This document shows positions 2,760 to 63,624 of a DNA stretch of 64,000 bases, one piece after another (the stretch's first letter is position 1; every line of letters begins with the position of its first letter). The DNA is from Octopus sinensis (lineage: Eukaryota). The DNA is taken from the NCBI RefSeq assembly GCF_006345805.1, contig NC_042998.1, forward strand, positions 28,210,001-28,274,000. Reading direction: 5' to 3'. The translations under genes were made by a program, and so were the position numbers. The notes beneath the pieces were generated by a model, which ran no database searches, had not been told where the DNA came from, and saw only the letters and a list, made by a program, of their open reading frames with translations.

Positions 2760-3045
2760 GTCCGATGTTACAGATATCGGACGGGTATGTTTGATTCTTA
2801 GTATTTTCAAATCTAAATCAGAAGAAATCTCTGAGCTGATGAAGGAAAAGTGGCGTTTTACCCACAAATCCAGAAACAGACTGTCCTCGGGTATCGTATA
2901 TGGATGTGATCTTTCATTGTTTTTCCCTTATACCTATGTAAGTTATTTTCTGAGTATGCATTGTCTGGAGACTTTTATTTGCAGTTGAAGAAATAGCCAA
3001 ATTTTTGGCTGCTATTTCTGAAAAGTTCGGTGTGTGGTAAAGTGA

Positions 3046-3050
<5 letters not shown>
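2760..3050 (+). mobile_element. Family A non-coding element, diverged single copy ending at (TA)n
   Basis: gggtatg...ttttcaaatc...ctgagctgatga and ggctgctatttct blocks match the 560 bp monomer at 41401-42590. Confidence 0.75.
2830..2891 (+). ncRNA. Type I hammerhead ribozyme motif (family A)
   Basis: tctgag-CTGATGA-a gga..gtgg/ccac..tcc a-GAAA-cagactg-TC-ctcggg; GUC site. Confidence 0.75.
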
Positions 3051-3111
<61 letters not shown>

Positions 3112-3134
3112 TATATATACATACATATATATAT

Positions 3135-3597
3135 AGGGAATATAATTCCAAAAGTTGCAGGGGAAAACTCAATTTTACAATTTTAAATCAAATTTCACAA
3201 TATATAATATATGTATATAATTTAGAGAAAAACCTCTATTAAACAATTCAATAAAGAAAGATGTTATTCACACCATATAGAAAACATATACTATAAGCAA
3301 AACCTTATTTTAAAAATCAATAAAGTACAATAAATAGTAAATATTAGTAAAAAGACTACGCACATTTCATGGCAATATTTTCTAATAGATATTAATAATA
3401 AAATCAATTCGATTCACAATTAAATCGAACTAAAATTCTATTTCGATTTAACTGTGAATCGAATTGATTTTATTATTTATTGTACTTTATTGATTTTTAA
3501 AATAAGTTTTCTTTTATAGTATATGTTTTCTATATGGTGTGAATAACATCTTTCGTTATTGAATCGTTTAATAGTGGTTTTCTCTAAATTATATACA

Positions 3598-3598
<1 letters not shown>
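3135..3598. mobile_element. Family D fold-back element with one-sided tail between (TA)n/(TACA)n tracts
   Basis: Outer arms 3211-3335 and 3474-3598, inner arms about 3395-3478, tail 3135-3210; related to 63361-63624. Confidence 0.8.
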
Positions 3599-3660
<62 letters not shown>

Positions 3661-4631
3661 GCTTACGTTCTGCTGATATTTACAGCTAATGGAATTATTC
3701 TTCCAAATCAAAAGTTAAATAAATCCTTGGGTCCTGGTATATGAAGGTAAATGTTACGCAGTATTTAACAACTTCATCGCTGTGAGTGAAAAATCGATCG
3801 GATACATATTGGATTTCACTTTTATGCGTTCATGTTTTATCTTCCAAGTTGATAAAGGAAATCCCAGAAATATATTGATACGTGTTCTATCAATATTATC
3901 GCTTCCAAACATTACAAACATTGCGATACTGCTGTTGCAGAATATATCTGATTCGCCATTAGATTGTTAAAATACTATGTCAGAATTACATCAATATTAA
4001 ACGAAACAGACAATATAGTAAGAAATATCATGCTTGTAAATCTATTGCCGATAAAGATCAACAATACATATTTTCATTCAATTAGAGAAGATGTCGATCA
4101 TTTTCTGATGTATGTTTGTATATAATAGCATATATTTTTGTCTTGAGTCATCAATGCCAAATTTATATCTACTATCACTGCTTTGTATCTGCAAACGACT
4201 TGAATGCATGTATTGTAATTTAGAAGTGTTCCAATCACTAGAATTAGTTATGTCATAGTGATTTTAGAAAACAAGGGGCTTTGAATTTCTATTGTGAAAT
4301 AAAGCATACACCCATGGATCTTCTGGCGTATGTACTGAGCAAATACAATACAAGCTGATATAAAAAAAAACATCCGATATTTTTTTCACAATTAGTACAA
4401 CGGTACGTATACCATCACTACCATACTCCCATCCATAAATTTAGCCAAAATAACATGGTATAGTCCAACATCTATAATGTATTGCACCAAGAAGTGATTT
4501 TGAATATTAAAACAAACAAAACTGGCATTCTGTCAGTTATGGTGACGGTTCCAGTTGATGCGGTCAGTGGAACAACTTTCTCATCAAATCAGCATTCAAG
4601 ATGCTGATGATTTCACAAGCATGCGCCGTAC

Positions 4632-4848
4632 AAGGCGGCGAGCCGGCAGAAACGTTAGCACGCCGGGCGAAATGCGTAGCCGTATTTCGTCTGCCGTTAC
4701 GTTCTGAGTTCAAATTCCGTTCAGCCTTTCGGGGTCGATAAATTAAGTACCTGTTACGCACTGGGGTCTATGTAATCGACTTAATTCGTTTGTGTGTCCT
4801 TGTTTGTCCCCTCTGTGTTTAGCCTCTTGTGGGTAGTAAAGAAATAGG
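4632..4848 (+). mobile_element. SINE family S1 (tRNA-derived head; cctttcggggtcgataaattaagtacc core resembling the Meta domain)
   Basis: Matches copies at 16428, 31690, 51441 and 61935. Confidence 0.8.
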
Positions 4849-5387
4849 TATGCGTAACGTTAATGTAGTTCTCAGGGAGGTTCGGCGTGGTACAGCGCGT
4901 AACAAGGCTGGGCCCATGAAATAGAAGTACCGCTCATTTTTGCTAGTTGAGTAGACAGAAACAAAATGAAATAAAATATCTTAATCAAGGACGCAACGCT
5001 CTGCCGAGAATCGCAATATTAAATCACAGGATATAAAATAAGGATATTAAAAAGAAGGGATGATCTGCACTGGAGATAATGGTAAGATATTAATCTTAAT
5101 GGCTAAGACAGACTATTACAAGCGTAACAAAAATGGTGAACAAGAATACTCTTAAATGTGATACGTAGATAGATACGCGTCGAATTTTCTTTTATGACAT
5201 TTTTATCGTTTGCAACTTTATGTTACATTACTTCTTTTGTCTATATTTTATATTATGTAAAATGTTTCGATAACTCGATAATTAAAATATTTCTTGGTGT
5301 TTATTATAGATAAAAAAGTATTAGCATTTCTCCAAGTCCGCCAAAACACAATTGTTTTTTTATTATTTTTGCGTGTGTAGTGTTTAA

Positions 5388-5787
5388 TCTCTCTGTATAT
5401 AAAGCTGAAGTTGTCTCTGTATGGCAGGTTTGGTAGCCTTCAACTAACACTATCTCCTCCGAGACCCTGCGGCGCAAGTTGACCATAATTGAGAGTATGA
5501 TATAAGAAGGCTTGTTCTTCATTCCATAGCAGAAAAAATTCAAATCGGACCATGTTAACACCAAGAATTATTTTCATCAAAAAGGTGCTTTTTTTCTATG
5601 GAAATCCCCATTTTTTTTTACGATTTTTCGACTGCTGTGTCGCCATTTTTCTGTGTATTTCAACCAGAAAAATGTTCACTTAAATAGAATAACAAGCTAC
5701 ATAATGCAAAGTTTTACTTTTCAAAAATTCCAATTCTAAAGGGTCGAAAAGAAAACAAGCCCGAGCAACGCTGGGCTATACTGCTAG
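5388..5787 (+). mobile_element. Non-autonomous Helitron
   Basis: A|TC start, subterminal hairpin cccgagcaacgctggg, CTAG|T end; three copies in the window. Confidence 0.85.
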
Positions 5788-6970: not shown

Positions 6971-7037
<67 letters not shown>

Positions 7038-7184
7038 AAGAGCAATAAAGATTCAAGTTAATTTAAATGAATTTACTTGAATATGGTACCTAACTTAGAT
7101 GCACCAAAAAAAACCATACTGATTTAACAATACAGTAATGTGGGGTGATTACAAGCGAGAAAGAAGCAACAAGAATGGATAGGT

Positions 7185-7275
7185 TTTTAGTACGATCGTT
7201 TCATACAAGGACAGGTTTTATTAAAAGTTGCAAAGATTACAGCATATAAACGAGTCCCGTACTCATCAGCTAAAA
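7185..7275 (-). ncRNA. Type I hammerhead ribozyme motif (family B, left arm)
   Basis: Mirror image of 7464-7554. Confidence 0.8.
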
Positions 7276-7463
7276 TACATGTGAGTTCTCTAGACATCCT
7301 AGTGTTTGAGGCTATACTCATTTTTTAAAATTCTGTGATAAGACTGTACATCATCTTTAAAGAACTTTAATGAACTTTAGAAATCTGTTTATGTTAATTA
7401 ATTATCTACATTACTTCATGAGTATAGCCTCAAACACTAGGATGTCTAGAGAACTCACATGTA

Positions 7464-7554
7464 TTTTAGCTGATGAGTACGGGACTCGTTTATATGCTGT
7501 AATCTTTGCAACTTTTAATAAAACCTGTCCTTGTATGAAACGATCGTACTAAAA
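7464..7554 (+). ncRNA. Type I hammerhead ribozyme motif with extended helix II (family B, right arm)
   Basis: ttttag-CTGATGA-gtac...gtat-GAAA-cgatcg-TA-ctaaaa. Confidence 0.8.
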
Positions 7555-7584
7555 ACCTATCCATTCTTGTTGCTTCTTTCTCGC

Positions 7585-8426: not shown

Positions 8427-9045
8427 ATTCGTTACAAAGACCACTTCTTCCAGTGAAAGCTAATTTACTTTAATATTAAAAGCTGAGACGAGAATAAACG
8501 CTTCATGCAAAGAGTTATAAAACAAGTATAGTATTTGTAGCGCTGTAAAGAAGTAGACTGGTGTTTATTAAAGCACACACAAACACGCACACATGTATAT
8601 ATGTATACACTTGAAGTTAAATATATATATATGAAAAATATGTTGTCTATTGACTATTTTATGCATGCTAGCCACTGGTAGAAAAATCTCTAATTTCTAT
8701 ACCCTATATAAATTTTCTAAATACTATCCTAGTAATTTTGAAGAAAATCAGCACATGAATTTCTTATTTGCTGCCGACTATAACTGCGCTTGCGCGGTGG
8801 ATTTGAATGATTATAATGTATAAAGATGAGACATGTGCTCTCTATTTGTCAAGGACGGGTAGAATTCCTGAGATCCACGGACGAGTTCCCTCTAGCGGTC
8901 CATGTCCCTTATCATCGCTGCTGTTTCCCTGCTTTCCTGAGCGTCAAATAATACTTTAATTGTTCCACGTCCTCGCGTTGCTGTGTTTTTTTTTCTGTGT
9001 TTTCTTGTTTGGATTAACTATATATATATATATATATATATATAA

Positions 9046-9230
9046 TAGATCGCTAGCCACTACACATTCTTTATTTTCTCTCATTGTTTCTTTCTGTGTT
9101 CCTTTCTGTGGAAGAGCGAAGGCTCGAAATGTTAAAGACTTTTTCCCTTCCCGAGCGTTATACTAATACATCTATTTGTTGTCTACATCACCTGTCTTCG
9201 TCTTTTGTTTTTTTTTTGTGAATTCTCCCT
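9046..9230 (+). mobile_element. Family C ~185 bp element in (TA)n with minimal HHR-like motif
   Basis: Copies at 33422, 34559, 53841 and 55511; inverted 3' fragment at 9332-9385. Confidence 0.8.
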
Positions 9231-10303
9231 ATAAATATATATATATGTATGTATGTATATGTATATATATGCAAATCTCTCTCTCTCTCCCTTTCTAACT
9301 CTTCTCTATGTATATATATAATATATATATAAGGAGAGTTTACGAAAAAAACAAAAGACGAAGACAGGTGATGTACAAAACAAACATACACACACACATA
9401 TACACCCCCACACATATTTAGACTATCACTCGGTCTATGTCATTGTATTTTAACATCTGTACAAATCGGCAATGTCCTTCATATTGTTATTCAGACGCTG
9501 AGCAACTTGCCTTTTTCTCTCTTACTTTACATCGTAATCCATTTCACGTTTCGACTGTTTTCCTCGGTCCTACCACATAGAATTGTTATTCGATTTAACG
9601 AAGTGCAAGCTTCAGTAAATCACAAATCTTTTTTTTTTTTCCGTTTCACTAAATGTTTGCCGACACAGAACACCACGAGTTTCCTCTGACTCCGGTTGCC
9701 ATGTGTATGCCACGCATTACGAATACCATAACTCAACTTTGAAACGAGACTACGAGCAAGACGAAAACTAACACAATAATGACCGTTAATGACCATGGCA
9801 CACTCACACAAATTTACAGCGCTAATTAGCTGTTATCGAAGCGTCTGAGAAAATTAATGCTGCATACAGGTGAGGAATACAAGCTTGGTGCAGCTATTGC
9901 TGCAGGGGAATCATTCAGTATTCAAGAAAGAAGAAAGGTAATAATAAATGGAAGAACAGTAAAAATAAAACAATACCCCCAAACTGCAACGCTGCAACTA
10001 TTACGGAATAACTGGAAATTATAATGAAAATAACGGTTTCAAATAGTGGCAGGAGGCCAGTAATTTTGAAGGAAGGTTCAAGTCGATAACATCGATCCCA
10101 GTGTTCACCTGTGTTTATTTTATTGGTTCCAGAAAGGTGAAAGGCTCGGTCGATCCCCGTGGTATTTGATCTCGGAATCGTAAATTAGGAAGAAATGCTA
10201 CTAAGAATGTTTTCCGGCGCGGTAACGATCCAGCCAGCTCGCTGCCTTGACGACGACGACGACAACAACAACAACAACAACAGCTGCAGCAGCAGCAGCA
10301 GCA

Positions 10304-10781: not shown

Positions 10782-10985
10782 GGAAGAAGAAGAAGAAGAA
10801 GAAGAAGAAGAAGAAGAAGAAGAAGAAGAAGAAGAAGGAGGAGGGGAAGAAGAAGGAGGAGGAGGAGGGGAAGAAGAAGAAGGAGGAGGAGGGGAAGAAG
10901 AAGAAGGAGGAGGAGGAGGGGAAGAAGAAGGAGGAGGAGGAGGAGGGGAAGAAGAAGGAGAAGAAGAAGAAGAAGGGGAAGAAGA
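10782..10985. repeat. Pure-purine (GAA)n/(GGA)n tract
   Basis: Direct run, about 200 bp containing only A and G. Confidence 0.97.
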
Positions 10986-13031
10986 CAACAACAGTAACAT
11001 TTTCTTTATTACCTGCAAACGTCCGAATAGATTACAGGCTAAATGATAAAACGGCTGAACGGTGTTTTAGAAAAGGCGTGTGCGTTGGGCAAAGAAGGTA
11101 CAGAAAAGATGATACAAGGCTTGTATCCTTTCCTATGACTCACCGTTTGATCATGGATTAGAGCACAAATTTATAAACAACTGATTCACGTATGACCTCT
11201 GCTCGTCTTGGTGCCACCTTTTTAATGTTGAGCATTCAGTGCCAAGTACCACAGGCATTGCATTTCTCTATTTGCCCGTGCATCTGTTACAGTTTCCCTT
11301 TATTGGTACACGAATGGTGCTTGGTGATACGGCTCAGAGATTGAGACATGGTAGATCAGTTCTGTTTCTATGTGCTCCAGAATATTTTTTTCAGTCAAGA
11401 GAATGGAATCGTTGTAGATATTTTATCCATACATCTGAGACTGTACTTTGCCTACACTAAAAATTCAATACTGCAGACATTTTAGCAAAATCGTTGCTTC
11501 CATGCTAATATTTTTCTCTTATTTATAGTTTCATAATTATTATTTCTCTCTTTACCTTCTCCGTGTGGGTATGTGTGTGGAGAATGCGTAACACTTGTTT
11601 TAACTTTTATTTCTCTTACACTAATTTGCATCTTGAGATACAATCTGTTTCTTTCATCATCATATTTCTCTGCTTGTATTTTGTTTTGAAGTGGTTTTCA
11701 CTTTTTAAAAAATTCGTTTTTGACTTTTTGAAGTCTCTGTTTACGTTCTGGAGGAATTTTCCAGCACTACTCCCTTCGTTGTTATTAGCATTTCCAGATC
11801 CTTTCAGAGTGGAAGAAGTGGTGGCTATTTGAAAACAAGAAATTCAAATGAAATTCTGTCTGTAAGACAATTCTTTCATCTGTTTCAGTTACTGGAAATA
11901 ATGTATCGACTTTCTAAATTTGTTGTTTGTAAATGTTCCAAGAAGAAAATCTTTCATTCTATAAGACACATAGGAATAATTTAAATATATTTGCATAACT
12001 AAGAAAGACGTTGCACAGCAAAGCAATAATAAGTACAATAATAATAGCAATAACACAAATGTACATATTTAACAAAACAACAACAATAAAAACCCTTTCT
12101 TTATTGCCCACAAATGTCAATGCATGCAATAAAAACTGGATCTGTAGTGTTCTGGACTTCGGCGAATGATCCAAAAATTCCAGCATTAACCGTAGAAGCA
12201 TTTAGTGAAGCAGAATGCGTTAAGTTCAAAATATCTCGTATTTTGGAAGAATTAACCGTATTGTCTCTGCTGCTAGTTTTATCCAAGAAAGAATACATCT
12301 ATAGGAATTATGTGTCTTTGAGGCTTTCATACTGTAGACATTATGCCAGTATCATGAAACACTAACAAAAGCGGTGCCTTATAAACATATGCCAGGAAGG
12401 GCGCAAAGAACAACAAAGTGCGACAATATTCATGATTATAGCAATAACTCAGAAAGAAGAGAGAAGAGGTTGAGAGAGAGAGAGAGAGAGAGAGTGTGTG
12501 TGTATGTGTGTGTGTGTGTGTGTGCGTGTGAGAAGGGAGACAGAGAAAGGGTTTGGGCAGGATAGACGTTAAGGTTCATCGACCAGATATTGTTGTCATG
12601 GACAACTAAGAATGGAAATGCCTTCTAATTGAAGCATCATTCCCAAAAAGCTTTGATATATCTCTCACAGAAACGGAAAAAAATATCAATATATGCAGAT
12701 GTATGAAGGCGATAACACAATATGGAGCGTGAAACCAGAATTATTGTCTATAATGATCGAACAACACGCACAGAAATACATATGTAAAAGCAAAAGATTT
12801 TATATATGTGCACCACACAGGAAATGACACTACTAAACAGAATGCATATATTATGTAGAACACTCGCAATAGAATAGAGAAGACTTTACCAAAAGTAAAG
12901 CACAGCACATAACCGAGTCTCATAGAACTGTATGTAACAGGGCAACTGTCGGGGCAAACATTGAGGGAAAATGGACTGATGTGAAAAAAAGTCTAATTTG
13001 GTGACACAGGACAAAAAATATAAACTATATA

Positions 13032-13193
13032 GGCATAGGTGTGACTATGTGGTAAGTAGTTTGCATACGAACCACATGGTTCCGGGTTCAGTCCCATTGC
13101 GTGGCACTTTGGGTAAGTGTATTCTACTAAAGCCTCGGGTCAACCAAAGCCTTGTGAGTGGATTTGGTAGACAGAAACTGAAAGAAGCCCGTC

Positions 13194-13249
<56 letters not shown>

Positions 13250-15001: not shown

Positions 15002-15390
15002 GGCGCAAGAGTGGCTCTGTGATAAGTAACTTGCTTACCAACCACATGGTCTGGGTTCAGTCCCACTGCGTGGCACCTTGGGCATGTGTCATCTAACTAT
15101 AGCCTCGGGCCGACCAAAGCCTTGTGAGTGGATTTGGTTGACGGAAACTGAAAGGAGCTCGTCGTATATATGTATACATACGTATGGATATGTGTGTATA
15201 TGTTTGCATGTCTGTGTTTGTCCCCCCAACGTCGCTGGTATGTTTACGTCCCCGTAACTTAGCTCTTCGGTAAAAAGAGAACGATAGAATAAGTACTAGG
15301 CTTACATAGAATAAGTCCTGGGTTCGATTTGCTCGACTAAAGGCGCTGCTCCAGCATGACCTCGGTCAAGTGACTGAAACAAGTAAAAGA
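15002..15390 (+). mobile_element. SINE S2, full length
   Basis: tRNA-like head, ccttgggca core, gactgaaacaagtaaaaga tail. Confidence 0.85.
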
Positions 15391-16427
15391 TTTTCTTTAT
15401 GTGCAATCTGAGGAAGATCTGGCTGCTATATTTTGGCCACCAGCAGATATGTAGAGGCTCCTTTGTTAAGGACAGGTTATATCGTACAGTGCAGAAGAAA
15501 TTACGTAACGTTTGCAGAATTCCTTTGCCACCCGATAGTTGTAAAGTTCATAGAATCTACACTTTGGCTTTGAAGTAAAATTGTTGTAATACAGAGATAT
15601 ATTATTACCAACTGTAGTGGCTACATAAAGGCATAATTTAGCAAACATACTTCTTCAAATGAAAACAAACAAACAATAATAATCTATACTAAAAAGTATT
15701 AGAGTATTTTGTACTAGGAAAAGACGGAAAATATTATATTAAGATTAAGTCTTTGTTCCTCTTCGCTGCTTTTGCTTCCCTCCGATTTGTGTCTAGAAGT
15801 GCTATAAAACGTCAAGCATGAAGAAAAGTTCAATGAAATTCGAAGCCATAAAATGCCCGAAATTAAACAATGGTAACCAAATTATATTTATTCATAGACA
15901 AAACAAATTTGAAACTTTAAAAAGTAAGTTATGTGCATATTTGAAGAAAACAAAAAAAAAAAAAATTAATGTAAATGTTCACAATGAATGGCCATATACC
16001 GCAGGGTTTTAGAACTTATTTTCCAGTGAATAAGGATAATAGAGGTGAACGACAAAAAACAATGAGTTTTACAGTTAAGTGCAAATGGAATCTTAATATA
16101 GAATGGAGACTACAATTCAATGTAGTTAAAGGGGCTGATATACAATGTTAATATAAAACGTACAGTATTTTTCAGTACAAACGATAACAAAACATAAATC
16201 TATCAAGCTTTATAGTGAACCTGACCTGAAATGTGTATTATATCCTGCAGCCCAAATCGAAATCCATAAAAGAAAAACATAGTAACAGGAATTAATGGCT
16301 GAATACAAAGTCACCAAACGTGTTTATTTTTGTTGTTCTGTTTTCTTTTTTTTTTTTTTGTAAGCTGAAAAATGTAAACAGGCCCGAGAGGTTTAGTAAA
16401 AAATATATATATATATATAACTGTTTC

Positions 16428-25494: not shown

Positions 25495-25561
<67 letters not shown>

Positions 25562-33638: not shown

Positions 33639-33799
33639 GTTTATATATACGGTACAAGCAATTAAGATTCAAGTGAGTTCTGTTGAATTCACATGAATAT
33701 GGTACTTAACTTGGATGCACCAGAAATCTATATGGTGTTAACCATACGACAAAGTGGGGTGATTATAAATAGGAAAAAAGCAACAAGAATGGATTAATA

Positions 33800-33888
33800 T
33801 TTCGGTACAATTGTTTCGTACGAAGACATCTTTAATAAGGCTACAAAAATTGCAGTAAATATAGGTGACTCGTACTCATCAGCCGAAA
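33800..33888 (-). ncRNA. Type I HHR motif (family B); duplicate at 34951-35039
   Basis: tttcgg-CTGATGA-gtac...gtac-GAAA-caattg-TA-ccgaaa. Confidence 0.82.
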
Positions 33889-34279
33889 AAACATCTGAGA
33901 TCCCCAAACATCAAAGGGGGGTGATGTTACACTCGTGAAACATCATGGAAAGTTCTATAAAATTGAGATTTAGATAACAAATTGATTTCTAAAAGTTCTT
34001 TTAGTATTGCACAGTCATATACCAGGTTTTAAAACATTTTTTCAAAACCTCTTAGTTTTCCAGAAAGTGAAGATGAACTCACACCCTCTCTTTCATCTTT
34101 ACTTTCTGGAAAACTAAGAGGTTTTCAACAAAAATTTTCAAACCTGATATATGACTGTGCAATACTAAAAGAACTTTTAGAAATCAATTTGTTATCTAAA
34201 TCTCAATTTTATAAAACTTTCCATGATGTTTCACGAGTGTAACATCACCCCCTTTGATGTTTGGGGATCTCAGATGTTT

Positions 34280-34368
34280 TTTCGGCTGATGAGTACGAGT
34301 CACCTATATTTACTGCAATTTTTGTAGCCTTATTAAAGATGTCTTCTTACGAAACAATTGTACCGAAA
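34280..34368 (+). ncRNA. Type I HHR motif (family B); duplicate at 35432-35520
   Basis: Same fold with one helix II mismatch (ttac). Confidence 0.78.
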
Positions 34369-34424
34369 TATTGATCCATTCTTGTTGCTTTTTTCCTATA
34401 TTTATATATATATATGTGTGTATA

Positions 34425-34789: not shown

Positions 34790-35554
34790 GTTTATATATA
34801 CGGAACAAGCAATTAAGATTCAAGTGAGTTCTGTTGAATTCACATGAATATGGTACTTAACTTGGATGCACCAGAAATCTATATGGTGTTAACCATACGA
34901 CAAAGTGGGGTGATTATAAATAGGAAAAAAGCAACAAGAATGGATTAATATTTCGGTACAATTGTTTCGTACGAAGACATCTTTAATAAGGCTACAAAAA
35001 TTGCAGTAAATATAGGTGACTCGTACTCATCAGCCGAAAAAACATCTGAGATCCCCAAACATCAAAGGGGGGTGATGTTACACTCGTGAAACATCATGGA
35101 AAGTTCTATAAAATTGAGATTTAGATAACAAATTGATTTCTAAAAGTTCTTTTAGTATTGCACAGTCATATACCAGGTTTTAAAAAATTTTTTCAAAACC
35201 TCTTAGTTTTCCAGAAAGTGAAGATGAACTCACACCCTCTCTTTCATCTTTACTTTCTGGAAAACTAAGAGGTTTTCAAAAAAAATTTTCAAACCTGATA
35301 TATGACTGTGCAATACTAAAAGAACTTTTAGAAATCAATTTGTTATCTAAATCTCAATTTTATAAAACTTTCCATGATGTTTCACGAGTGTAACATCACC
35401 CCCTTTGATGTTTGGGGATCTCAGATGTTTTTTTCGGCTGATGAGTACGAGTCACCTATATTTACTGCAATTTTTGTAGCCTTATTAAAGATGTCTTCTT
35501 ACGAAACAATTGTACCGAAATATTGATCCATTCTTGTTGCTTTTTTCCTATATT

Positions 35555-39819: not shown

Positions 39820-39895
<76 letters not shown>

Positions 39896-39940
39896 GAATA
39901 AATAAATGGAGTTTAACGCAGGTGTAAATAAAATTCTTTT

Positions 39941-40028
39941 ACTTCCGACACATGTTTCAAAGATATCACTGATATTATTCCAAAGGAATAAAATGGTGAA
40001 AACAATGTCATCTTCTCTTCAGGGAAGT
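39941..40028 (-). ncRNA. Type I HHR motif with extended helix II (family E)
   Basis: acttcc-CTGAAGA-g aagat...atctt t-GAAA-catgtg-TC-ggaagt; element ends about 45 nt downstream at (TA)n. Confidence 0.8.
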
Positions 40029-40171
40029 GAAGAAATGAAACTCGTCAATAAGACATTTTAACAGAAAATGATGGATTTTCTGTTAAAAAGTTACTTATCT
40101 ATTTTTTCCGTGTTAATTGTTTACAAGGGAAAAATACACATATCTATTTATATACATATATAAAAAAATTA

Positions 40172-40452: not shown

Positions 40453-40524
40453 AAAGTTTGTTTTGGCTGCTATTTCTAATGAGTTCAGTATGCGGCAAAG
40501 TAATTTATTTTAAGCCATTTTATA

Positions 40525-40531: not shown

Positions 40532-40575
<44 letters not shown>

Positions 40576-40766
40576 ATTATATAAAAGGGCTTAGTAGTAA
40601 AATAAATTACTTTGCCGCATACTGAACTCATTAGAAATAGCAGCAAAAAAAACTTTTTTAAAACTATTTCTAATACTTAAAGAAAACCTCTCTCATATAG
40701 TGTTTGCTCAATTCAACTCACGAAAGTATGGGGGTAGAGACATTAAAAAATCAAATGCAAATTATT

Positions 40767-40819
40767 TGAGAACGTACGTTTCAAGATTAGTCAAACTCGA
40801 CACTTCTATCATCAGCTCA
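40767..40819 (-). ncRNA. Type I HHR motif (family A); second copy at 41326-41378
   Basis: tgag-CTGATGA-t aga..gtc/gac..tct t-GAAA-cgtacg-TT-ctca. Confidence 0.7.
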
Positions 40820-42254
40820 GAACTCCCTGGTTTGGATTTGAAAACACTGAAAGTGGGAGCATACCCTTTCGGCTTCTTATCGCTTCTGAAGATCTGCTCG
40901 AAACTAACAGTGCCAGCAAACTCAAATATGCAAGCGAAGAATTTCTGCTCTCCCCTTTCCACCAGCGTGGGTTAAAATCAGTAAACACTATGCTTTTTTC
41001 GGTAAAATCCGAGGCATTATGTAGAGAGAGATGAATTATAATTTCAACAATTGAGGGTAAAATTAATTAATTAATCAATTTCACCAAGTATTCAGTATGC
41101 AAAGGGACCATTTAAGGCGAATTCAAATTATTACATTATATAAAAGGGCTTAGTAAAATAAATTACTTTGCCGCATACTGAACTCATTAGAAATAGCAGC
41201 CAAAAAAAACTTTTTTAAAACTATTTCTAATACTTAAAGAAAACCTCTCTCATATAGTGTTTGCTCAATTCAACTCACGAAAGTATGGGTGTAGAGACAT
41301 TAAAAAATCAAATGCAAAGGTTATTTGAGAACGTACGTTTCAAGATTAGTCAAACTCGACACTTCTATCATCAGCTCAGAACTCCCTGGTTTGGATTTGC
41401 ATGGTCCCTTTGCATACTGAATACTTGGTGAAATTGATTAATTAATTAATTTTACCCTCAATTGTTGAAATTATAATTCATCTCTCTCTATATAATGCCT
41501 CGGATTTTACCGAAAAAAGCATAGTGTTTACTGATTTTAACCCACGCTGGTGGAAAGGGGAGAGCAGAAATTCTTCGCTTGCATATTTGAGTTTGCTGGC
41601 ACTGTTAGTTTCGAGCAGATCTTCAGAAGCGATAAGAAGCCGAAAGGGTATGCTCCCACTTTCAGTGTTTTCAAATCCAAACCAGGGAGTTCTGAGCTGT
41701 TGATAGAAGTGTCGAGTTTGACTAATCTTGAAACGTACGTTCTCAAATAACCTTTGCATTTGATTTTTTAATGTCTCTACCCCCATACTTTCGTGAGTTG
41801 AATTGAGCAAACACTATATGAGAGAGGTTTTCTTTAAGTATTAGAAATAGTTTTAAAAAAGTTTTTTTTGGCTGCTATTTCTAATGAGTTCAGTATGCGG
41901 CAAAGTAAATTATTTTACTAAGCCCTTTTATATAATGTAATAATTTGAATTCGCCTTAAATGGTCCCTTTGCATACTGAATACTTGGTGAAATTGATTAA
42001 TTAATTAATTTTACCCTCAATTGTTGAAATTATAATTCATCTCTCTCTATATAATGCCTCGGATTTTACCGAAAAAAGCATAGTGTTTACTGATTTTAAC
42101 CCACGCTGGTGGAAAGGGGAGAGCATAAATTCTTTCTTCGCTTGCATATTTGAGTTTGCTGGCACTGTTAGTTTCGAGCAGATCTTCAGAAGCGATAAGA
42201 AGCCGAAAGGGTATGCTCCCACTTTCAGTTTTTCAAATCCAAACCAGGGAGTTC

Positions 42255-42307
42255 TGAGCTGATGATAGAAGTGTCGAGTTTGACTAATCTTGAAACGTAC
42301 GTTCTCA
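42255..42307 (+). ncRNA. Type I HHR motif (family A); copy at 41693-41745 has a CTGTTGA core
   Basis: Same fold as 40767-40819. Confidence 0.7.
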
Positions 42308-42585
42308 AATACCTTTGCATTTGATTTTTTAATGTCTCTACCCCCATACTTTCGTGAGTGAATTGAGCAAACACTATATGAGAGAGGTTTTCTTTAAGTA
42401 TTAGAAATAGTTTTAAAAAAGTTTTTTTTTGCTGCTATTTCTAATGAGTTCAGTATGCGGCAAAGTAATTTATTTTACTAAGCCCTTTTATATAATGTAA
42501 TAATTGAATTCGCCTTAAATGGTCCCTTTGCATACTGAATACTTGGTGAAATTGATTAATTAATTAATTTTACCCTCAATTGTTG

Positions 42586-42625
<40 letters not shown>

Positions 42626-42991
42626 TGTAAATATGCATATATATATGTATACATATATATATATATATATATATATGTACATATATATATATATATGTAC
42701 ATATATATATATAAAAAAATATATATATGTTACATTACTCGATAGTCAAGATAAAACTCTGAGTTTCAGATGCCGAAGTGGAAATCCACAACACCATCTC
42801 TTCGGTTATCTGGCTATTTGAAAACGCTATGAAAAAATACCGTTAAATAAAGGGAAATTACTGTGTTATAACTCTGCTTGCCTGCGTACTTATACATCGC
42901 TCGCATTTTTCGTCATAAAAATTATATAAAAATACATAAAAAATATAAAAATATATAAAATCTTCTTGGGACATAACATAGAAAGCATGTT

Positions 42992-43752
42992 CTATCTGTT
43001 TTCTTTAGGGGACCAAAAACGTAACAGAAATTTAGTCACATCTGGGCATGATCCGAAAAGTTCTGTCCTTGTATTTAGACATGTAGTAGGGTCTAAGCTG
43101 CTTTTCCAGATAAGCCATCTCTCCATGTCGCATAGACCGCACCTTCCGCTGCCGTTGGTATAGGGCTTACATCTGGCCAAAATCTTCCATTGTATGTTAT
43201 AATCGACACCTTTATCTCTTAAAGACCAAATATGATTAGATAATTGTGTCGCTTTTCTTTTGTTCCAGTGCCTAAAGCTCAAAGTGTGGTTATTGAACCT
43301 GGCCTTGAAATTACCCTCTGTAAGGCCCACGTATTTCTTCGTCGAAACGGTGTCTTTAGTGGTTATAGAGTTTACGGTAGCTTCATATATGATGGTCTTG
43401 AACATGCAAGCTCCATTTAGCGGGCACAATTCTTTATTCCTGCATGAACAGCTGTTTTCTTGTTGTGTTTTTTTGCATGTTATGTTTGATTATGTTTTTA
43501 AAATTGGTAGTTGAACTAAAACTAATTTTTAAATTGTGTCTATTGAAGTGTTTCCTATAAGTATGGTTAACTGGAAAATGTCTATCTATCAGTGCTAGGA
43601 AATATTTACCTATATTGAAGGCCACCTCGGGTGAGTAAGGGGGCGTAAACCAGATGACCTTCCTATTTCTATTATTCCTTTTCCTTACTGTTGGGCTAGT
43701 GATAGGTGTATATTTTATTTTTTCCCTAAAACCACTATCTTTTAAAGCCTTA
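42992..43752 (-). pseudogene. PLE ORF C-terminus: RT thumb/linker plus GIY-YIG endonuclease, frameshifted
   Basis: IWFTPPYS..NIGKYFLALIDRHFP; CSCRNKDCPLNGAC; IIYEATV..YVGLTEGNFKARFNNH; CGLC; LNTRTEL..CP. Confidence 0.9.
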
Positions 43753-43794
43753 ATATAAACTGGGGCAACGTTATTGAAAACTGGCTTTAAATAA

Positions 43795-44553
43795 TAAGGC
43801 TTTAAAAGATAGTGCTTTTAGGGAAAAAATAAAATATACACCTATCACTAGCCCAACAGTAAGGAAAAGGAATAATAGAAATAGGAAGGTCATCTGGTTT
43901 ACGCCCCCTTACTCACCCGAGGTGGCCTTCAATATAGGTAAATATTTCCTAGCACTGATAGATAGACATTTTCCAGTTAACCATACTTATAGGAAACTCT
44001 TCAATAGACACAATTTAAAAATTAGCTTTAGTTCAGCTACCAATTTTAAAAACATAATCAAACATAACATACAAAAAAACACAACAAGAAAACAGCTGTT
44101 CATGCAGGAATAAAGATTGTGCCCGCTAAATGGAGCTTGCATGTCCAAGACCATCATATATGAAGCTACCGTAAACTCTATAACCACTAAAGACACCGTT
44201 TCGACGAAGAAATACGTGGGCCTTACAGAGGGTAATTTCAAGGCCAGGTTCAATAACCACACTTTGAGCTTTAGGCACTGGAACAAAAAAAAGCGACACA
44301 ATTATCTAATCATATTTGGTCTTTAAGAGATAAAGGTGTCGAGTATAACATACAATGGAAGATTTTGGCCAGATGTAAGCCCTATACCAACGGCAGCGGA
44401 AGGTGCGGTCTATGCGACATGGAGAGATGGCTTATCTGGAAAAGCAGCTTAGACCCTACTACATGTCTAAATACAAGGACAGAACATTTCGGATCATGCC
44501 CACATGTGACTAAATTTCTGTTACGTTTTTGGTCCCCTAAAGAAAACAGATAG
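43795..44553 (+). pseudogene. PLE ORF C-terminus, second copy with additional frameshift
   Basis: ORFs 43922-44113, 44117-44326 and 44365-44553 mirror the minus-strand copy. Confidence 0.9.
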
Positions 44554-44733
44554 AACATGCTTTCTATGTTATGTCCCAAGAAGATTTTATATATTTTTAT
44601 ATTTTTTATGTATTTTTATATAATTTTTATGACGAAAAATACGAGCGATGTATAAGTCCACAGGCAAGCAGAGTTATAACACAGTAATTTCCCTTTATGT
44701 AACGGTATTTTTTCATAGCGTTTTCAAATAGCC

Positions 44734-44796
44734 AGATAACCGAAGAGATGGTGTTGTGGATTTCCACTTCGGCATCTGAAACTCAGAGTTTTATCT
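44734..44796 (+). ncRNA. HHR-like motif in the PLE 3' UTR (U4C core); mirror at 42749-42811 (-)
   Basis: agataa-CCGAAGA-gatg..gtgg/ccac..catc t-GAAA-ctcagag-TT-ttatct; helix I extends with atag/ctat. Confidence 0.6.
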
Positions 44797-44895
44797 TGAC
44801 TATTGAGTAATGTAACATATTATTGTATAGATAAATTTCCTCTATTTACATAATATTGAGGTCTCTTTCTTTCTTTTGTTATCTTACCGTTTTAT

Positions 44896-44945
<50 letters not shown>

Positions 44946-50169: not shown

Positions 50170-51141
50170 TATCTTCATCTTTAGTTACAGTTTCCCATGT
50201 AAACTACATAATACGCAGAATTGTCGGACTAATACAGTAGTGTGTTTGGAGGAAGATTTGGCTGCTATTTCTATCAGGTCTACCTACCATGTAGAGGTCT
50301 GAACATAATTTTCTTTAACATATTTGCATTTCAAAAATTTAACAAAATTTTCCATAAATCAACTATCGTAAAAAATTTCTACCATGACCTCACATTTTCT
50401 ATGTGTGTGTGTACCCTAAAAGACGTGATTAGACAGAGGTCCAATAAACTAGTTCTCAGAAACAGACTACGTACAATGTCTTTCTTCACAACTCCTGAAG
50501 CTGTTTTCTGACAGGGGGTGGGCGGAGTCAGGAAATCTTCATACAGCTGGGAGATCCAATCTTTTATTAAATTGGATACGTCTGCTATTAAGTTGCAGAA
50601 CTTTGGCAGTACAGTTAAAAACCATTTCTGCTTTACTTCTTATATACAATTTCCCTGTAAATTCTTACGGCTTCATTTTTTGGTGATGATTGAAATGTCA
50701 AACATTTTCTAACTGTTAAAGCAATTCTTTATGTCAACTTTTTAATGCTTCTCTTTTAAAATCATAATACCTAATGTCTAACTGAAAACGATAGAAGATC
50801 TCTTATCATTTAGCTTCATGCTTATTCAGTATTGCCATTTTAAATTAATTTACCGATATTGTCCTTCAAAGCTGCATGCAGTTTTTGAAATGTTTCAATA
50901 TTTTGTTTCTTATTTACCGTTATACATTTCCACCTATAATAACAGATAAAGATTAATACTTCGTTCAAAAACCTTAACGTTTTATTTCAGACACGGGTTC
51001 AAGTTGCAAAAAACTATACTTTTAAAAAAGAATCTCGTGAAGTTTGGCAGTAAAAACCATCTTTACAGATAATGCTTAACCGATAACGATCAATGGTCTT
51101 GTGTCCCATCTTTGCCGTACAGTTTCAAGTCAACCATGATG

Positions 51142-51440: not shown

Positions 51441-51645
51441 AAGGCGGCAAGCTGGCAGAATCGTTAGCACGCCGGTCAAAATGCTTAGCGGCGTTTCGTC
51501 TGTTGTCACGTTCTGGGTTCAAATTCCGCCGATGTTAACTTTACCTTTCATCGTTTCGGGGTCGCTAAATTAAGTATGAGTCGATAAATTTCTTAATACT
51601 GGGGTCGATGTTACCGACTAGTCTCCTGCCTACAAATTTCAGATC
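51441..51645 (+). mobile_element. SINE S1, diverged
   Basis: aaggcggcaagctggcagaatcgttagcacgcc head. Confidence 0.75.
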
Positions 51646-52015: not shown

Positions 52016-52099
52016 AAAAAGGTGATATCACAAGTGTTTAAGATCAAACAACTGACAAGCAAATATGTGGTATTGAGCAGAATATTTGCTGTAGCCCTA

Positions 52100-52183
52100 T
52101 CATCATTATAATCATCGTCATCATCTTCATCATCATCACCATCACCATCATCATCGTCATCACCATCATCCTCACCATCATCC

Positions 52184-52216
<33 letters not shown>

Positions 52217-52662
52217 CCATCACCACCATCATCACCACCATCATCACCATCATCATCACCATCATCACCATCATCACCATCATCACCACCATCATCATCA
52301 TCATCATCAAAATCATCACCATCATCACCATCATCATCACCATCATCATCATCATCACCATCATCACCATCATCACCATCATCACCACCATCATCACCAT
52401 CATCATCACCATCATCACCATCATCACCATCATCACCACCATCATCATCATCATCACCATCATCAGAACCATGGTATCACTATCACCACCATCATCACCA
52501 CCATCATCACCATTATCATCTCCATCATCACCATCATCACCACCATCACCACCATCATCATCATCACCACCACCATCACCATCACCACCACCATCATCAT
52601 CACCACCACCACCATCATCATCATCACCACCATCATCATCATCATCATCACCAGCACCACCA
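52100..52662. repeat. (CAT/CAC)n tract, followed by (CT)n at 52776-52890
   Basis: Direct runs. Confidence 0.96.
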
Positions 52663-52783
52663 TTGAAACGGTTGATATTACTTTACTGAAGAGAACAAAC
52701 GAAATTGGAGTGACCAATATGTTAGACAATTTTCATGATAAAATGCATTTAATGCACAACACTTCTAACGTACTAAGAGCGAA

Positions 52784-53840: not shown

Positions 53841-54007
53841 CTCCTTGTTTCTCTCCGTGTTTCTTTTCTGTGTATCTTTCTGTTGAAGAGCGTAGGCTCG
53901 AAACGTAAAAGACTTGTCTTATTTATATTCCTGAGCGCCATACTAATACAATTGTTTGTTTGTACTCCACCTGCCTTCGTCTTTTGTTTATTTTCATAAA
54001 GCTTCCC
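53841..54007 (+). mobile_element. Family C element (HHR-like motif at 53875-53912, CTGTTGA core)
   Basis: tcttt-CTGTTGA-a-gagc gtag gctc-GAAA-cg-TA-aaaga. Confidence 0.75.
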
Positions 54008-54032
54008 GTTATATATATATATATATATAGCA

Positions 54033-55248: not shown

Positions 55249-55311
55249 ATATATATATATGTGTATATATTTATATATATATATATTTATATATATATAT
55301 ATATATATATA

Positions 55312-55478
55312 TACACGACGAGCTCCTTTCAGTTTCCGTCTACCGAATATACCCTCAAGAATTTGCTTGGCCTGAGGTTATAGTAGAAGACACTTGCCCA
55401 AAGTGCCACTGAGTGGGACTGAATTCGGAACCATGTGGTTGGTAAGCAAGCTACTTATCACGCAGCCACTCCTGCGTC
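55312..55478 (-). mobile_element. SINE S2, 5' half
   Basis: Reverse complement of the S2 head. Confidence 0.8.
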
Positions 55479-55510
55479 TAAAACCAAAAAAATAAATAAT
55501 AAATAAAAAG

Positions 55511-55690
55511 ACCGCTAGCCACTAAACCTTTTTTTTTATTTTCTCTCCCTGTTCATTTCTGTGTTCCTTTCTATCGAAGAGCGTAGACTCGAAACATAAA
55601 ATACTTTCTCACTTCCCGAGCATTATACTAATACATCTGTTTGTTGTTTACACACACGTCTTTGTCTTTTGTTTTGTTTGCAAATTCTCA
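55511..55690 (+). mobile_element. Family C element, diverged
   Basis: gaccgctagccact...gaagagcgtagactcgaaac...aattctc. Confidence 0.75.
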
Positions 55691-55723
55691 CTATACACAT
55701 ACACACACACACAAACACACACA

Positions 55724-61029: not shown

Positions 61030-61033
<4 letters not shown>

Positions 61034-61407
61034 TAAGCAATAAGGGTTCAGCAACGAATTGCCTTACCACATACCGAATTTAGAAATAGCAGTCAAAGGG
61101 TTATAGCTATTTCTTCTACTAAAAAGGGAGATCTCAGTAAAAACAGCAATTGGAAGGCTGACACAAACAGTGTCAGCCTTCCAATTGCTGTTTTACTGAG
61201 ATCTCCCTTTTTAGTAGAAGAAATAGCTATAACCCTTGACTGCTATTTCTAAATTCGGTATGTGGTAAGGCAATTCGTTGCTGAACCCTTATTGCTTAGT
61301 ATTACTTAAATTTTCCTCAAATGAGGCTTTTACATGCCGAAGACTACTTGGTGTAATTGATAATTATTCCAAATTAATTAATTTCACCCTTCATTATTAC
61401 GGATAAC
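61030..61407. mobile_element. Family A-related fold-back with one-sided tail
   Basis: Arms 61030-61164 and 61170-61302, 5 nt loop; tail 61303-61407 homologous to 42495-42590. Confidence 0.88.
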
Positions 61408-61825
61408 TATATATATATATATATATAATGAAGAAATAAATTGGATAATTATCTCTTTATAAAAGTTAGAGCCTCGAGAATATAAATTAACTCGCCCCTA
61501 TAAACCTATATCTTCTCGAAACGGCCGTCAAACCTTTCACCTGCTCAAGATTGCTTTTAAAATCAGTTTATACCATCTTTCTCATCTATTTGGATTACCA
61601 CTATACATTCACCATCCGCATATTTTAATATCCTCATTGATTTTAATACAGACAAACAACATCGCAAGTACATTTATGTATTTAAATATTTATAAATTTG
61701 TATATTATCTCTTGTGTATATGAATGCACCTATGTATGCTGTGGAGTATTCTGACGCTTTGAAATATATTGGTTGAATATGAACACTGACATTTTCTCTC
61801 CCTTGGTTATATATATATATATTAT

Positions 61826-61922
<97 letters not shown>

Positions 61923-61934
61923 GACTGATCTTAC

Positions 61935-62130
61935 AGAATACTTAGCACGCCGTACAAAATGCTTAACAGCATTTCGCCTGTCTTTATGTTCTGAGATCAA
62001 ATTCCATCCAAGTTGGCTTTACATTTCATCTTTTCTGGATCGATGAAATAAGTACCATTTGAGCACTGATGTCAATATACTCGACTTAACCCCTCCCCCG
62101 AATTTGCTGGCCTTGTGCCAAAATGTGAAA
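61935..62130 (+). mobile_element. SINE S1-related, diverged
   Basis: ttagcacgccg..aaatgcttaac..gatgaaataagtacc. Confidence 0.65.
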
Positions 62131-62764
62131 CCAATATATGTGTGGTGTGTGTGTGTGTGTCTGTGTGTGAGACGGAGAACGTAATTTTATTTCCTGGTAA
62201 TTTAAGGGACGTTGATTTTGAAAGAAATCATTAGGAAAACAATTTATTGCAGAAATATAAAGCTAAAAACATGCAATATGAATGAGTTTTAAAAAGAATT
62301 CTGTCTAATTTTTTTTAATGCGGCTTAAAGAAAACAAAACATAAAATAGATGTTATAAAAAAGCTTAGAAAATAACGGTGTGTACGGTGATTTTAGTAAA
62401 ATATTCGAAGAATGCAGTTCTTCTCCAAGGAGAAGAAATCGCCACTATTAACCCTTAGAATCATAATGACCATTTATCAGCTTCCATTACCAATACATCC
62501 TGCAATGTGATTCGAAAACAATAGAATTCCCGAAATGCCAATATTCACACCATTTATCTTAATCATCTTCTATTCACAGCCAAGAACAACGTTTGTGTCG
62601 AACATCGGATTCAATATTGTATTTTTTAAACCTTAACTGAATGGTTGCAGTGGAAAACAATAAATTACTGACAGTCTCTTTCGACATATCAGATAAAGCA
62701 TCATTGAGTTTCTAGTTAAGGAATAGAAGTTCTGAGCTCGAACGCAAACTATTACTAATATATA

Positions 62765-62940
62765 TCTTATATAAAATCCGTTCTGTCTGTCTGTCTGTCT
62801 GTGAGTCTTCTCTAATCTTGGGCATCCTCCATCCGATTGCGCTCAAATTTGATATGTAGATACCGACGGTATCTGGACGTGTATAAGTCTTGAAAAAATT
62901 ACAAGAATCGATTCCAGGTGAGAATGCGATCGATAAAGCC
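62765..62940 (+). mobile_element. Possible Helitron/Helentron-like 5' fragment
   Basis: A|TC start, (TCTG)n, ccgattgcgctcaaatttg; no 3' end found. Confidence 0.4.
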
Positions 62941-63320
62941 GTTTTTGTCCTGCTTTTCTTCCGTCAACCTGTACATAACTGCACCTTCCATTTTTTGTTG
63001 TTTTTGTACTGCTTAAAGTCACGTTTCTTTCCAGCCAAGCTTACTGTTTAAACCATCTTTATGTTCTCCCAGTCAACAGCCTTATCATTACTGGTATTTT
63101 AAACTCTTCGGTTGCATATTTGCGTGAATAAAGTCGTCTTTCTTTGGAATAGAAAAGAGTCTATCTTTATTTCTTCTTTTGCTGGTGTCTCAAATATAGG
63201 TTAAATCAGTGTTTCTCAAAGGGGTGGCCTATGGGACGGTCGGACAAGTTGTTTTGAGAAAATTTGGTTTAAATGTTTGACAACTCAGCATCGTCCATTG
63301 GACAGGGGGCGTTTAGCTCG

Positions 63321-63351
<31 letters not shown>

Positions 63352-63360
63352 TATATATAT

Positions 63361-63622
63361 ATTATATTAAATTAGAGATAAAACTACTATTAGGCAAATC
63401 ATACAATGAAAAACTTAAGCCAATACATAAGATTAATTAATTTATATTATTTTGAATATATATCAAAATTATTAAAAAAAGATAATTAGTTTTTCATTGT
63501 ATGATTTGCCTAATAGTGGTTTTATCTCTAATTTAATATAATATAATATTTTACTATAAAATTAGATTCAATCCTAAATCTGATTTTTCCCTGTAAGTTT
63601 AGATTTATTCCCTAATGTTTTG

Positions 63623-63624
<2 letters not shown>
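63361..63624. mobile_element. Family D fold-back with one-sided tail
   Basis: Arms 63361-63415 and 63488-63542; tail related to 3135-3210 (agggaata..cagggaaaa.tca). Confidence 0.8.

Follow-up and report, generated by a model that had tools for sequence, protein, structure and literature searches.

Inverted, one-tailed structures at (TA)n microsatellites of Octopus sinensis as probable Penelope-like element products, several with hammerhead motifs

What are the seven inverted structures that sit at (TA)n microsatellites in one stretch of the Octopus sinensis genome? The stretch, called the window here, is the 64,000 nucleotides (nt) at positions 28,210,001 to 28,274,000 of contig NC_042998.1 (assembly GCF_006345805.1). 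A first-pass annotation of it had described hammerhead ribozyme (HHR)-bearing fold-backs, one of them encoding an endonuclease (EN) of Penelope-like elements (PLEs). We consider it quite probable that the structures, named S1 to S7 here, are integration products at (TA)n microsatellites of PLEs with a reverse transcriptase (RT) and GIY-YIG EN of the (TA)n-targeting Hydra-clade type. The observation is real and well above chance, and its interpretation was right in kind, with the HHRs overstated and the claim of novelty not upheld.

Self-BLAST and a repeat search of the window recovered all seven structures where they had been placed, with S1 at 3136..3598, S2 at 7036..7584, S3 at 33650..34398, S4 at 40578..42589, S5 at 42725..44897, S6 at 61030..61407 and S7 at 63361..63623. 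Each consists of inverted copies arranged head-to-head between (TA)n arrays. The two arms are 81% identical in S1, where an indel of ~62 nt also separates them, 95% in S3, 98% in S4, 97% in S5, 97% in S6 and 82% in S7. The S2 arms are 89% identical overall and 99% outside a unique 96-nt spacer (7322-7417) lying between them.

The (TA)n or TA-rich flanks attributed to the structures are also present, as arrays adjoin 14/14 outer ends. The (TA)n arrays of at least six units number 39 and together occupy 3.8% of the window, so their presence at all outer ends cannot be chance. Likewise, one arm and only one is tailed in 7/7 structures. By alignment of the outer ends of both arms in each structure, the tails measure 71 nt in S1 (3136-3206, on the left arm), 119 nt in S2 (7036-7154), 114 nt in S3 (33650-33763), 93 nt in S4 (42497-42589), 81 nt in S5 (44817-44897), 105 nt in S6 (61303-61407, next to the arms at 61030-61302) and 74 nt in S7 (63550-63623).

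The short arm meets (TA)n where the long arm reads TATA, ATAT or GTA, and the long arm runs 71-119 nt further until it too reaches (TA)n. If the arms picked their start independently, such a 7/7 pattern would have a probability of ≤0.5^7 = 0.008, for structures that were themselves selected by layout (ascertainment). The same rule is seen in a foreign Hydra-clade PLE that inserted independently at two places (contigs L010 and L015, one PLE family), where a tail-less short inverted arm lies beside the tailed main copy. Their common tail is ~66-72 nt long, and 30-40 bp is quoted for PLEs generally (PMC8557442), against 71-119 nt here.

PLE insertions are known for their 5′ truncation, partial tandems (pseudo-long terminal repeats, pLTRs), inverted 5′-truncated copy, tail at one end and HHRs in the pLTRs, and (TA)n is targeted by Neptune, Naiad and Hydra (PMC8557442). 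The insertion signature of a microsatellite site, an inverted 5′-truncated partner and a tail at one end only is found in 7/7 structures.

The protein homology comes from S5, which does code for a remnant of the GIY-YIG EN ascribed to it. Each of its arms codes ~260 residues, and the stop codon is followed by 267 nt up to the short-arm end. The EN open reading frame (ORF) occupies 42992-43429 on the minus strand, and upstream of it a frameshift lies in an A-run common to both arms. The translation has 21 homologues with E down to 4e-60, several of which show an RT-like GLYRDDG motif upstream of the EN region (spotted by eye; no RT domain model was run). The Pfam GIY-YIG match of S5 itself is weak, its E = 0.015 falling short of the cut-off, and that of the homologue P0002 passes. 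The contigs of the nearest protein homologues (L001 and L003) have no DNA in common with the window and are therefore from a different species.

The hallmarks of the Hydra clade are a CxCX5C linker, no CCHH in the GIY-YIG core, (TA)n insertion and canonical HHRs (PMC8557442). In S5, the linker CSCRNKELC has the CxCX5C form, its C119, C121 and C127 being invariant in an eight-sequence alignment, and no Cys occurs between IIYEATV and KYVGLT, that is, none inside the GIY-YIG core. S5 thus resembles the Hydra-clade PLEs of Craig et al. 2021 (PMC8557442) in its C-terminal GIY-YIG EN, its CxCX5C linker and its core without CCHH. It resembles them also in the (TA)n insertion, an HHR-derived motif in the non-coding region after the ORF, the inverted 5′-truncated partner and the tail at one end. 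It differs from them in that the whole RT is gone (truncated downstream of the YRDDG motif), in the frameshift and in the HHR core CCGAAGA. By tblastn, its arms begin at about residue 109 of the homologue P0001, downstream of the LYRDDG motif. Judged by its sequence, S5 is a dead, 5′-truncated and frameshifted Hydra-clade PLE.

The HHR motifs were sought with two descriptors. The strict one called for a CUGANGA box, a helix II paired from its very first position, GAAA, a hairpin for helix III, UH and no fewer than 3 bp in helix I. It gave 7 matches against 0.02 in shuffles, namely both arms of S2 (7185-7275, minus; 7464-7554, plus), the four arms of S3 (33800-33888, minus; 34280-34368, plus) and its copy (34951-35039, minus; 35432-35520, plus), and a single-arm element, E. 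The relaxed one, which tolerated a single mismatch in the core and a single unpaired base beside helix II on either side, gave 14 matches against 1.05 in shuffles. It added the four S4 copies (one with a CUGUUGA core), both S5 arms (CCGAAGA; 42749-42811, minus; 44734-44796, plus) and another single-arm element, F. The type-I motif thus extends to two single-arm elements outside the seven structures, E and F, the latter by descriptor only.

Hence the HHRs had been claimed too widely. S2, S3 with its duplicate and S4 do carry canonical type-I motifs (CUGANGA...GAAA), that of S5 is mutated, and S1, S6 and S7 have none, as no CUGANGA box occurs in them on either strand.

A foreign sample of 80 loci coding relatives of the S5 protein, taken from metagenome contigs, shows where PLEs carry their HHRs. 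The motif was found in 62/80 loci and 71/72 motifs were on the ORF strand. In 54 loci, it lies within 900 nt after the EN match end, at 79-524 nt. The locus L002 reads in the order of stop codon, HHR, 45 nt and (TA)n. Helix II is 10-25 nt long in all 72 motifs, in a scan that permitted up to ~110 nt.

Covariance models were built from the foreign HHRs alone, R1 from 20 sequences and R2 from 23, and the window was searched with filters off. In the training alignment A4, the pairing cells reached 89%, as opposed to 68% in shuffles and 25-44% with the partners slid. The best window matches (10 for R1 and 12 for R2) fall only in S2, S3, S4, S5 and E. The four S3 copies gave E values of 4.8e-7 to 3.1e-6 with R1 and 4.4e-5 to 5.3e-4 with R2, and S2 gave 8.9e-6 and 1.9e-4. 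S5 had no match at E ≤ 10 with R1 and one at 4.9e-4 with R2. The respective values are 0.054 and 0.011 for S4, 0.13 and 0.012 for E, and 2.4 and 0.18 for F, the last being not significant. A scan of metagenomes with the S2/S3 HHR pattern had 0 matches.

The motifs vary in sequence and keep their pairing. Helix I differs fully between families and yet remains complementary (UUUUAG/CUAAAA, UUUCGG/CCGAAA, ACUUCC/GGAAGU). The homologous S2 and S3 differ by two compensatory pairs in helix I, and S4 and F by a compensatory change in helix II (AGA/UCU to GGA/UCC in F). All helix III segments are self-complementary (ACGAUCGU, ACAAUUGU, ACAUGUGU, ACGUACGU, ACAGACUGU, ACUCAGAGU), and this palindromic helix III is the dimer-type arrangement of PLE and other metazoan HHRs (PMC4209133). 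The minimal and dimeric HHRs of PLEs share further traits with those here, namely the type-I topology, an unpaired nucleotide beside helix II and extreme sequence variability with compensatory changes, and their opposite-strand dual motifs were taken as truncated PLEs (PMC4209133).

The length of helix II sets S2, S3 and E apart. It is ~60 nt in these three, outside the 10-25 nt range of the 72 PLE-borne motifs and against stems of 4-8 bp in the minimal and dimeric HHRs (PMC4209133). S4 has a U.U pair at the base of helix II, which is common among the foreign Hydra-clade HHRs and is found as a mismatch in one axolotl retrozyme HHR (PMC7229834).

The S5 motif has the core CCGAAGA (U4C) and a 1-nt bulge before GAAA. 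It lies where an HHR is expected, 187 nt past the stop codon, and R2 gives it 21.6 bits. We regard it as a true HHR homologue, mutated and not canonical. From established mutagenesis work, the U4-to-C change is predicted to cause strong impairment.

Every HHR found points to the nearest (TA)n, as had been stated of their outward reading, and the cleavage sites lie 27-290 nt from (TA)n. From the predicted cleavage site to the short-arm end, the distance is 27-52 nt for S2, S3, S5 and E; for F and S4 it is 160-190 nt. The S6 arms are 136 nt each, against ~190 nt from HHR to end in S4, and would be too short to hold an HHR at the S4 distance. All HHR-bearing copies keep the HHR intact upstream of their ends, so the templates were uncleaved, multimeric, or circular or religated. 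Ribozyme processing of the element RNAs is plausible.

The non-coding structures do form three unrelated groups, as proposed, with S2 and S3, S4 and S6, and S1 and S7 paired by Smith-Waterman scores against shuffles and by BLAST. Their tails are homologous within each pair, and S2 and S3 are 75% identical across tail and HHR. The S4/S6 group also takes in the single-arm element F and a fragment of ~70 nt, and S5 and E are singletons. The S4 group has in common a stem-loop, AGAAAUAG...CUAUUUCU, ~50 nt before the short-arm end, together with the homologous tail. S6 has the stem-loop module, a tail homologous to that of S4 and no HHR.

F, a diverged member of the S4 superfamily (2680..3048, plus), ends at (TA)n 3049-3135 and is 64% identical to the S4 unit over 393 nt. 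Its type-I HHR lies at 2829-2891 on the plus strand, with the core CTGATGA at 2836, and its stem-loop is conserved at about 2988-3030. The ~70-nt fragment, a 3′ piece of the S4 family (40453..40520, plus), ends at the short-arm, tail-less site and opposes the S4 left arm across (TA)n 40521-40583. E (39896..40130, minus) adjoins (TA)n 39756-39895 with its 3′ end and has its HHR at 39941-40028 on the minus strand, with the core CUGAAGA. At its inner (5′) end is a mini fold-back of 14 perfect bp with a 5-nt loop (40056-40088), which looks like a snap-back when cDNA (complementary DNA) synthesis ended.

The duplicate of S3 at 34801..35549 proved to be a copy within a tandem segmental duplication of 1.15 kb. 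The duplicated segments, 33271-34471 and 34403-35620, are 97% identical and took along S3, a 185-nt repeat and (TA)n arrays. Unequal exchange between TA arrays was probably the cause.

S4 stands out in being made of two head-to-head tandem arrays. Its complete unit of 559-562 nt has no RT or EN coding similarity and occurs with four HHR copies, one of them mutated. The left arm (40578-41399, minus) holds 1.47 units with HHRs at 40765-40821 and 41324-41380, and the right arm (41401-42589, plus) holds 2.13 units with HHRs at 41691-41747, where the core is mutated to CUGUUGA, and 42253-42309. S4 is demonstrably non-autonomous, and is the only such structure here. The claim of non-autonomous families stands accordingly for S4 with its complete unit, and the other families are not separable from short 5′-truncated PLE copies. 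There is no tandem arrangement in S1, S2, S3, S6 and S7; these and E cannot be told apart as a short 5′-truncated autonomous PLE, of 3′ untranslated region (UTR) or pLTR only, or as a separate non-autonomous family.

With its tandem non-coding monomers and predicted type-I HHRs, S4 fits the animal non-LTR retrozyme concept. Like the structures here, animal non-LTR retrozymes have non-coding AT-rich units, type-I HHRs and a short palindromic helix III, and like S4 they occur as head-to-tail tandem copies (Cervera and de la Pena 2020, PMC7229834; Li et al. 2026, bioRxiv 10.64898/2026.07.22.740005). Their mobilisation by PLEs and derivation from pLTRs have been proposed (PMC7229834; bioRxiv 10.64898/2026.07.22.740005). 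The differences are that the S4 monomer has 560 nt against 150-450 nt, that the S4 arrays are short (1.5 and 2.1 units), head-to-head and with a PLE tail, and that S1, S2, S3, S6 and S7 are not tandem.

The layout could arise in the following way. The EN would cut both strands of a (TA)n tract, and the exposed 3′ ends would each prime reverse transcription of the element RNA, giving two 5′-truncated cDNAs placed head-to-head with their 3′ ends outward. The template would be multimeric, uncleaved or circular, with two internal start sites, and each priming event would use one of them. The distal start would yield the arm with the 71-119 nt tail and the proximal start, 27-190 nt downstream of the HHR cleavage site, the tail-less arm. 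The HHRs (dimer-type type-I with a helix III of 1-2 bp and a palindromic loop) would be part of the pLTR module of the element, and would cut multimeric transcripts to unit-length RNAs (560 nt for S4) able to circularise. The twin priming origin of the fold-backs, the mobilisation in trans and the circular RNA are what we infer here. The non-coding structures would then be either pLTR-derived retrozyme-like elements or very short 5′-truncated PLE copies.

Much of this course has a counterpart in PAc, the Poseidon PLE of Anolis carolinensis, for which the cutting and extension of both strands was seen in vitro, along with two RT start sites that bound the tail (Frangieh et al. 2024, PMC11167929). 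The internal position of the two sites, the AT-rich target, the HHR upstream of the start sites and the insertion without need for HHR cleavage are alike too. In S4, both arm ends fall inside the continuous tandem unit, so the initiation was internal. The inner endpoints are unequal in S4 and S2, which supports two separate cDNAs.

Pure snap-back, in which a single hairpin cDNA makes both arms, was rejected as a general origin, since the two arms of S4 begin at different points of the unit and a unique 96-nt spacer lies in S2. A snap-back origin is possible for S3, S5 and S6.

Several points weigh against the PLE reading or against parts of it. The sequence base of the analysis is one genomic window. 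A tblastn search with the 21 homologues found no RT similarity in the whole window, its matches falling only in S5, downstream of the RT catalytic motif; as S5 is a fragment without RT, its PLE membership rests on the relatives that show the RT-like motif and the EN. The tblastn search with the S5 homologues found no intact or autonomous PLE in the window either. By Smith-Waterman scores and shuffles, no 3′ module from HHR to tail is in common between S5 and any non-coding family, so mobilisation of these families in trans by the PLE of this window, as had been claimed, is not demonstrated.

The HHRs and the ends add to the same side. S1, S6 and S7 have no match to R1 or R2 at E ≤ 10. The Rfam hammerhead models gave nothing at the gathering score or at E ≤ 10 in the whole window or in slices of 0.5-5 kb, which is likely due to the 1-bp helix III and the long helix II. 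Minimum free energy (MFE) folds did not reproduce the HHR for most copies, and MFE and cofold predictions of the HHR segments are uninformative except for helix I and II of S3. With spacers of 14, 34 and 5 nt, the centres of S3, S5 and S6 are nearly symmetric, which snap-back of one cDNA explains more readily than two independent truncations do. Finally, the start sites of PAc in vitro show no strand difference (PMC11167929), which leaves the strict one-tail rule unexplained.

The closest competing explanation is that the non-coding structures other than S4 are very short 5′-truncated copies, of 3′UTR or pLTR only, of autonomous PLEs elsewhere in the genome. We hold this to be possible, if on the doubtful side. 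As the HHR follows the EN match end by 79-524 nt in the 54 foreign loci, arms of 90-370 nt could be pure UTR. Heavy 5′ truncation of PLE insertions is known (PMC8557442), and Cervera and de la Pena in 2014 took solitary and opposite-strand HHRs for truncated PLEs (PMC4209133). However, the ~60-nt helix II of S2, S3 and E, outside the PLE-borne range, points to a lineage of their own. S6 and F share a superfamily with S4, whose tandem units are demonstrably non-coding, and no arm except those of S5 has coding similarity.

Miniature inverted-repeat transposable elements (MITEs) or foldback DNA transposons, inserting at TA and moved by a Tc1/mariner-type transposase, would be short, non-coding and hairpin-forming with TA-associated flanks, as MITEs of the Stowaway/Tc1-mariner type are. 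The structures are indeed near-palindromic with TA-rich flanks, a mariner with 39-bp terminal inverted repeats (TIRs) resides at 48879-50171, and S1, S6 and S7 have no HHR, but we find this origin very improbable. The ends are asymmetric, without symmetric TIRs, and the one-sided tail of 71-119 nt is everywhere and homologous between family members. S4 has unequal arms built from tandem units, the same layout holds HHRs and a PLE EN, and the outer ends are unlike the mariner TIR. Moreover, the genuine MITE-like palindrome of the window (28646-28819, arms 81% identical) has symmetric ends (CACAAAAACCGTTAGATTCACTT...) and no (TA)n flank. The MITE reading of the seven structures was rejected on the lack of symmetric TIRs and of mariner-TIR similarity, target site duplications being not discernible inside (TA)n. 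Hardly any weight falls on the last rival, that the inverted junctions are assembly artefacts in which chimeric or hairpin reads collapse two separate copies. PLE tandem and inverted structures are known to upset assemblies (PMC8557442), and the foreign contigs L021 and L082 stop inside such palindromes. Against it stand the arm divergence of 1-19% plus indels, the unique spacer in S2, the duplication of S3 with its flanks after forming, and the same layout seen seven times with different sequences.

A further fold-back search of the window yielded only the palindrome at 28646-28819 and two facing pairs of short 3′ fragments (9175-9384 and 40453-40656). Beside the palindrome is a weak HHR-model match (28552-28592, minus strand, E 0.11-0.56), probably by chance.

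Returning to the PLE integration, the one-tail rule invites a bolder suggestion, which we advance as unlikely though worth stating. When PLEs insert by target-primed reverse transcription on both strands, the two RT start sites may be shared out between the strands by obligate complementarity, one distal and one proximal per insertion, with priming maybe guided by pairing of the (TA)n end with UAUA-like motifs. As part of the same suggestion, S2, S3 and E may represent an undescribed lineage of PLE-derived HHRs with a helix II of ~60 nt that inserts as inverted dimers and not as tandem arrays. The basis for the complementary use is 7/7 fold-backs here and 2/2 foreign insertions. In PAc, the start sites used in vitro are not homologous to the target and have no strand bias (PMC11167929). 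Here, in contrast, the motifs at the ends are TATA-, ATAT- or GTA-like and could base-pair with (TA)n, and each inverted pair uses one start site of each kind. Complementary use and guided priming, if true, would depart from the strand-neutral and homology-independent initiation reported in vitro.

The structures had been presented as families not described before, and this claim fails, as the tail, the inverted 5′-truncated copy, the (TA)n bias and the HHR are already published PLE hallmarks. The first three were reported for PLEs (PMC8557442; PMC11167929), and non-autonomous PLE derivatives with HHRs are known as the animal non-LTR retrozymes (PMC7229834; bioRxiv 10.64898/2026.07.22.740005), which have been argued to derive from PLE pLTRs (bioRxiv 10.64898/2026.07.22.740005). 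Already in 2014, Cervera and de la Pena described HHR pairs of Schistosoma mansoni that lie on opposite strands, 100-700 bp from each other (PMC4209133). Hence what we have are new examples of described kinds, a remnant of a Hydra-clade PLE along with PLE derivatives that are retrozyme-like or truncated, and the current understanding is unchanged.

Of modest interest are the tails, for their length and for their strict limit to one per pair, and the very long helix II shared by S2, S3 and E. That limit is a small hint, from in vivo insertions, at how the steps of PLE integration are ordered. S4, a retrozyme-like tandem array with the full PLE insertion signature, gives structural support to the view of retrozymes as non-autonomous PLE derivatives.

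For annotation, the earlier warning holds that such hairpin-shaped non-coding PLE products are easily taken for MITEs, and they can equally be taken for microRNA-like hairpins. Rfam at permissive thresholds shows how, giving ~140 microRNA-type matches, which are spurious and all on (TA)n arrays or PLE fold-backs (e.g. 7250-7489 and 40464-40645). Taken together, a one-sided tail, a (TA)n flank and an HHR offer a simple annotation rule for such products.

The surrounding DNA is AT-rich and eukaryotic (GC 0.30-0.45), and dense in microsatellites and interspersed repeats, with 86 arrays by Tandem Repeats Finder. The mariner-family element at 48879-50171 has two ORF pieces (HTH_48 and Transposase_1), so is interrupted, and is bracketed by direct repeats of 91% identity (48476-48667 and 50562-50755). 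Long simple arrays are (AACC) x136 at 27339-27876, with which the strongest GC-skew excursion of the window coincides, (ATC)n of ~560 bp at 52099-52663 and (GAA)n of ~200 bp at 10783-10985.

A short interspersed element (SINE)-like repeat forms short tandem arrays at 16423-17181 and 31737-32224 (a 266-bp period x2.9 and a 184-bp period x2.6), and dispersed copies at 4631-4851, 19210-19366, 51441-51576 and 61934-62089. ARAGORN found no tRNA in the window, including none in this repeat.

Other repeats accompany the (TA)n arrays. A non-coding family of ~185 nt (9045-9229, 33413-33603, 34555-34740, 53848-54026 and 55492-55695, with an inverted 3′ fragment at 9330-9384) contains an AC-rich segment (acaccccacc) and no HHR, and several of its copies are flanked by (TA)n left and right. 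Two 3′ ends of the family are opposed across a TA-rich array at 9175-9384. This family may be another (TA)n-targeting or PLE-mobilised element. Two more families flank (TA)n arrays, one at 2373-2588, 25508-25721, 36977-37152, 30805-30917 and 15234-15329, and the other at 13027-13243, 25320-25525, 15011-15180, 55265-55461 and 37126-37295. They lie on opposite sides of the TA arrays, e.g. around 25477-25570, and may be two halves of a single element that has a TA array inside, or further TA-targeted insertions.

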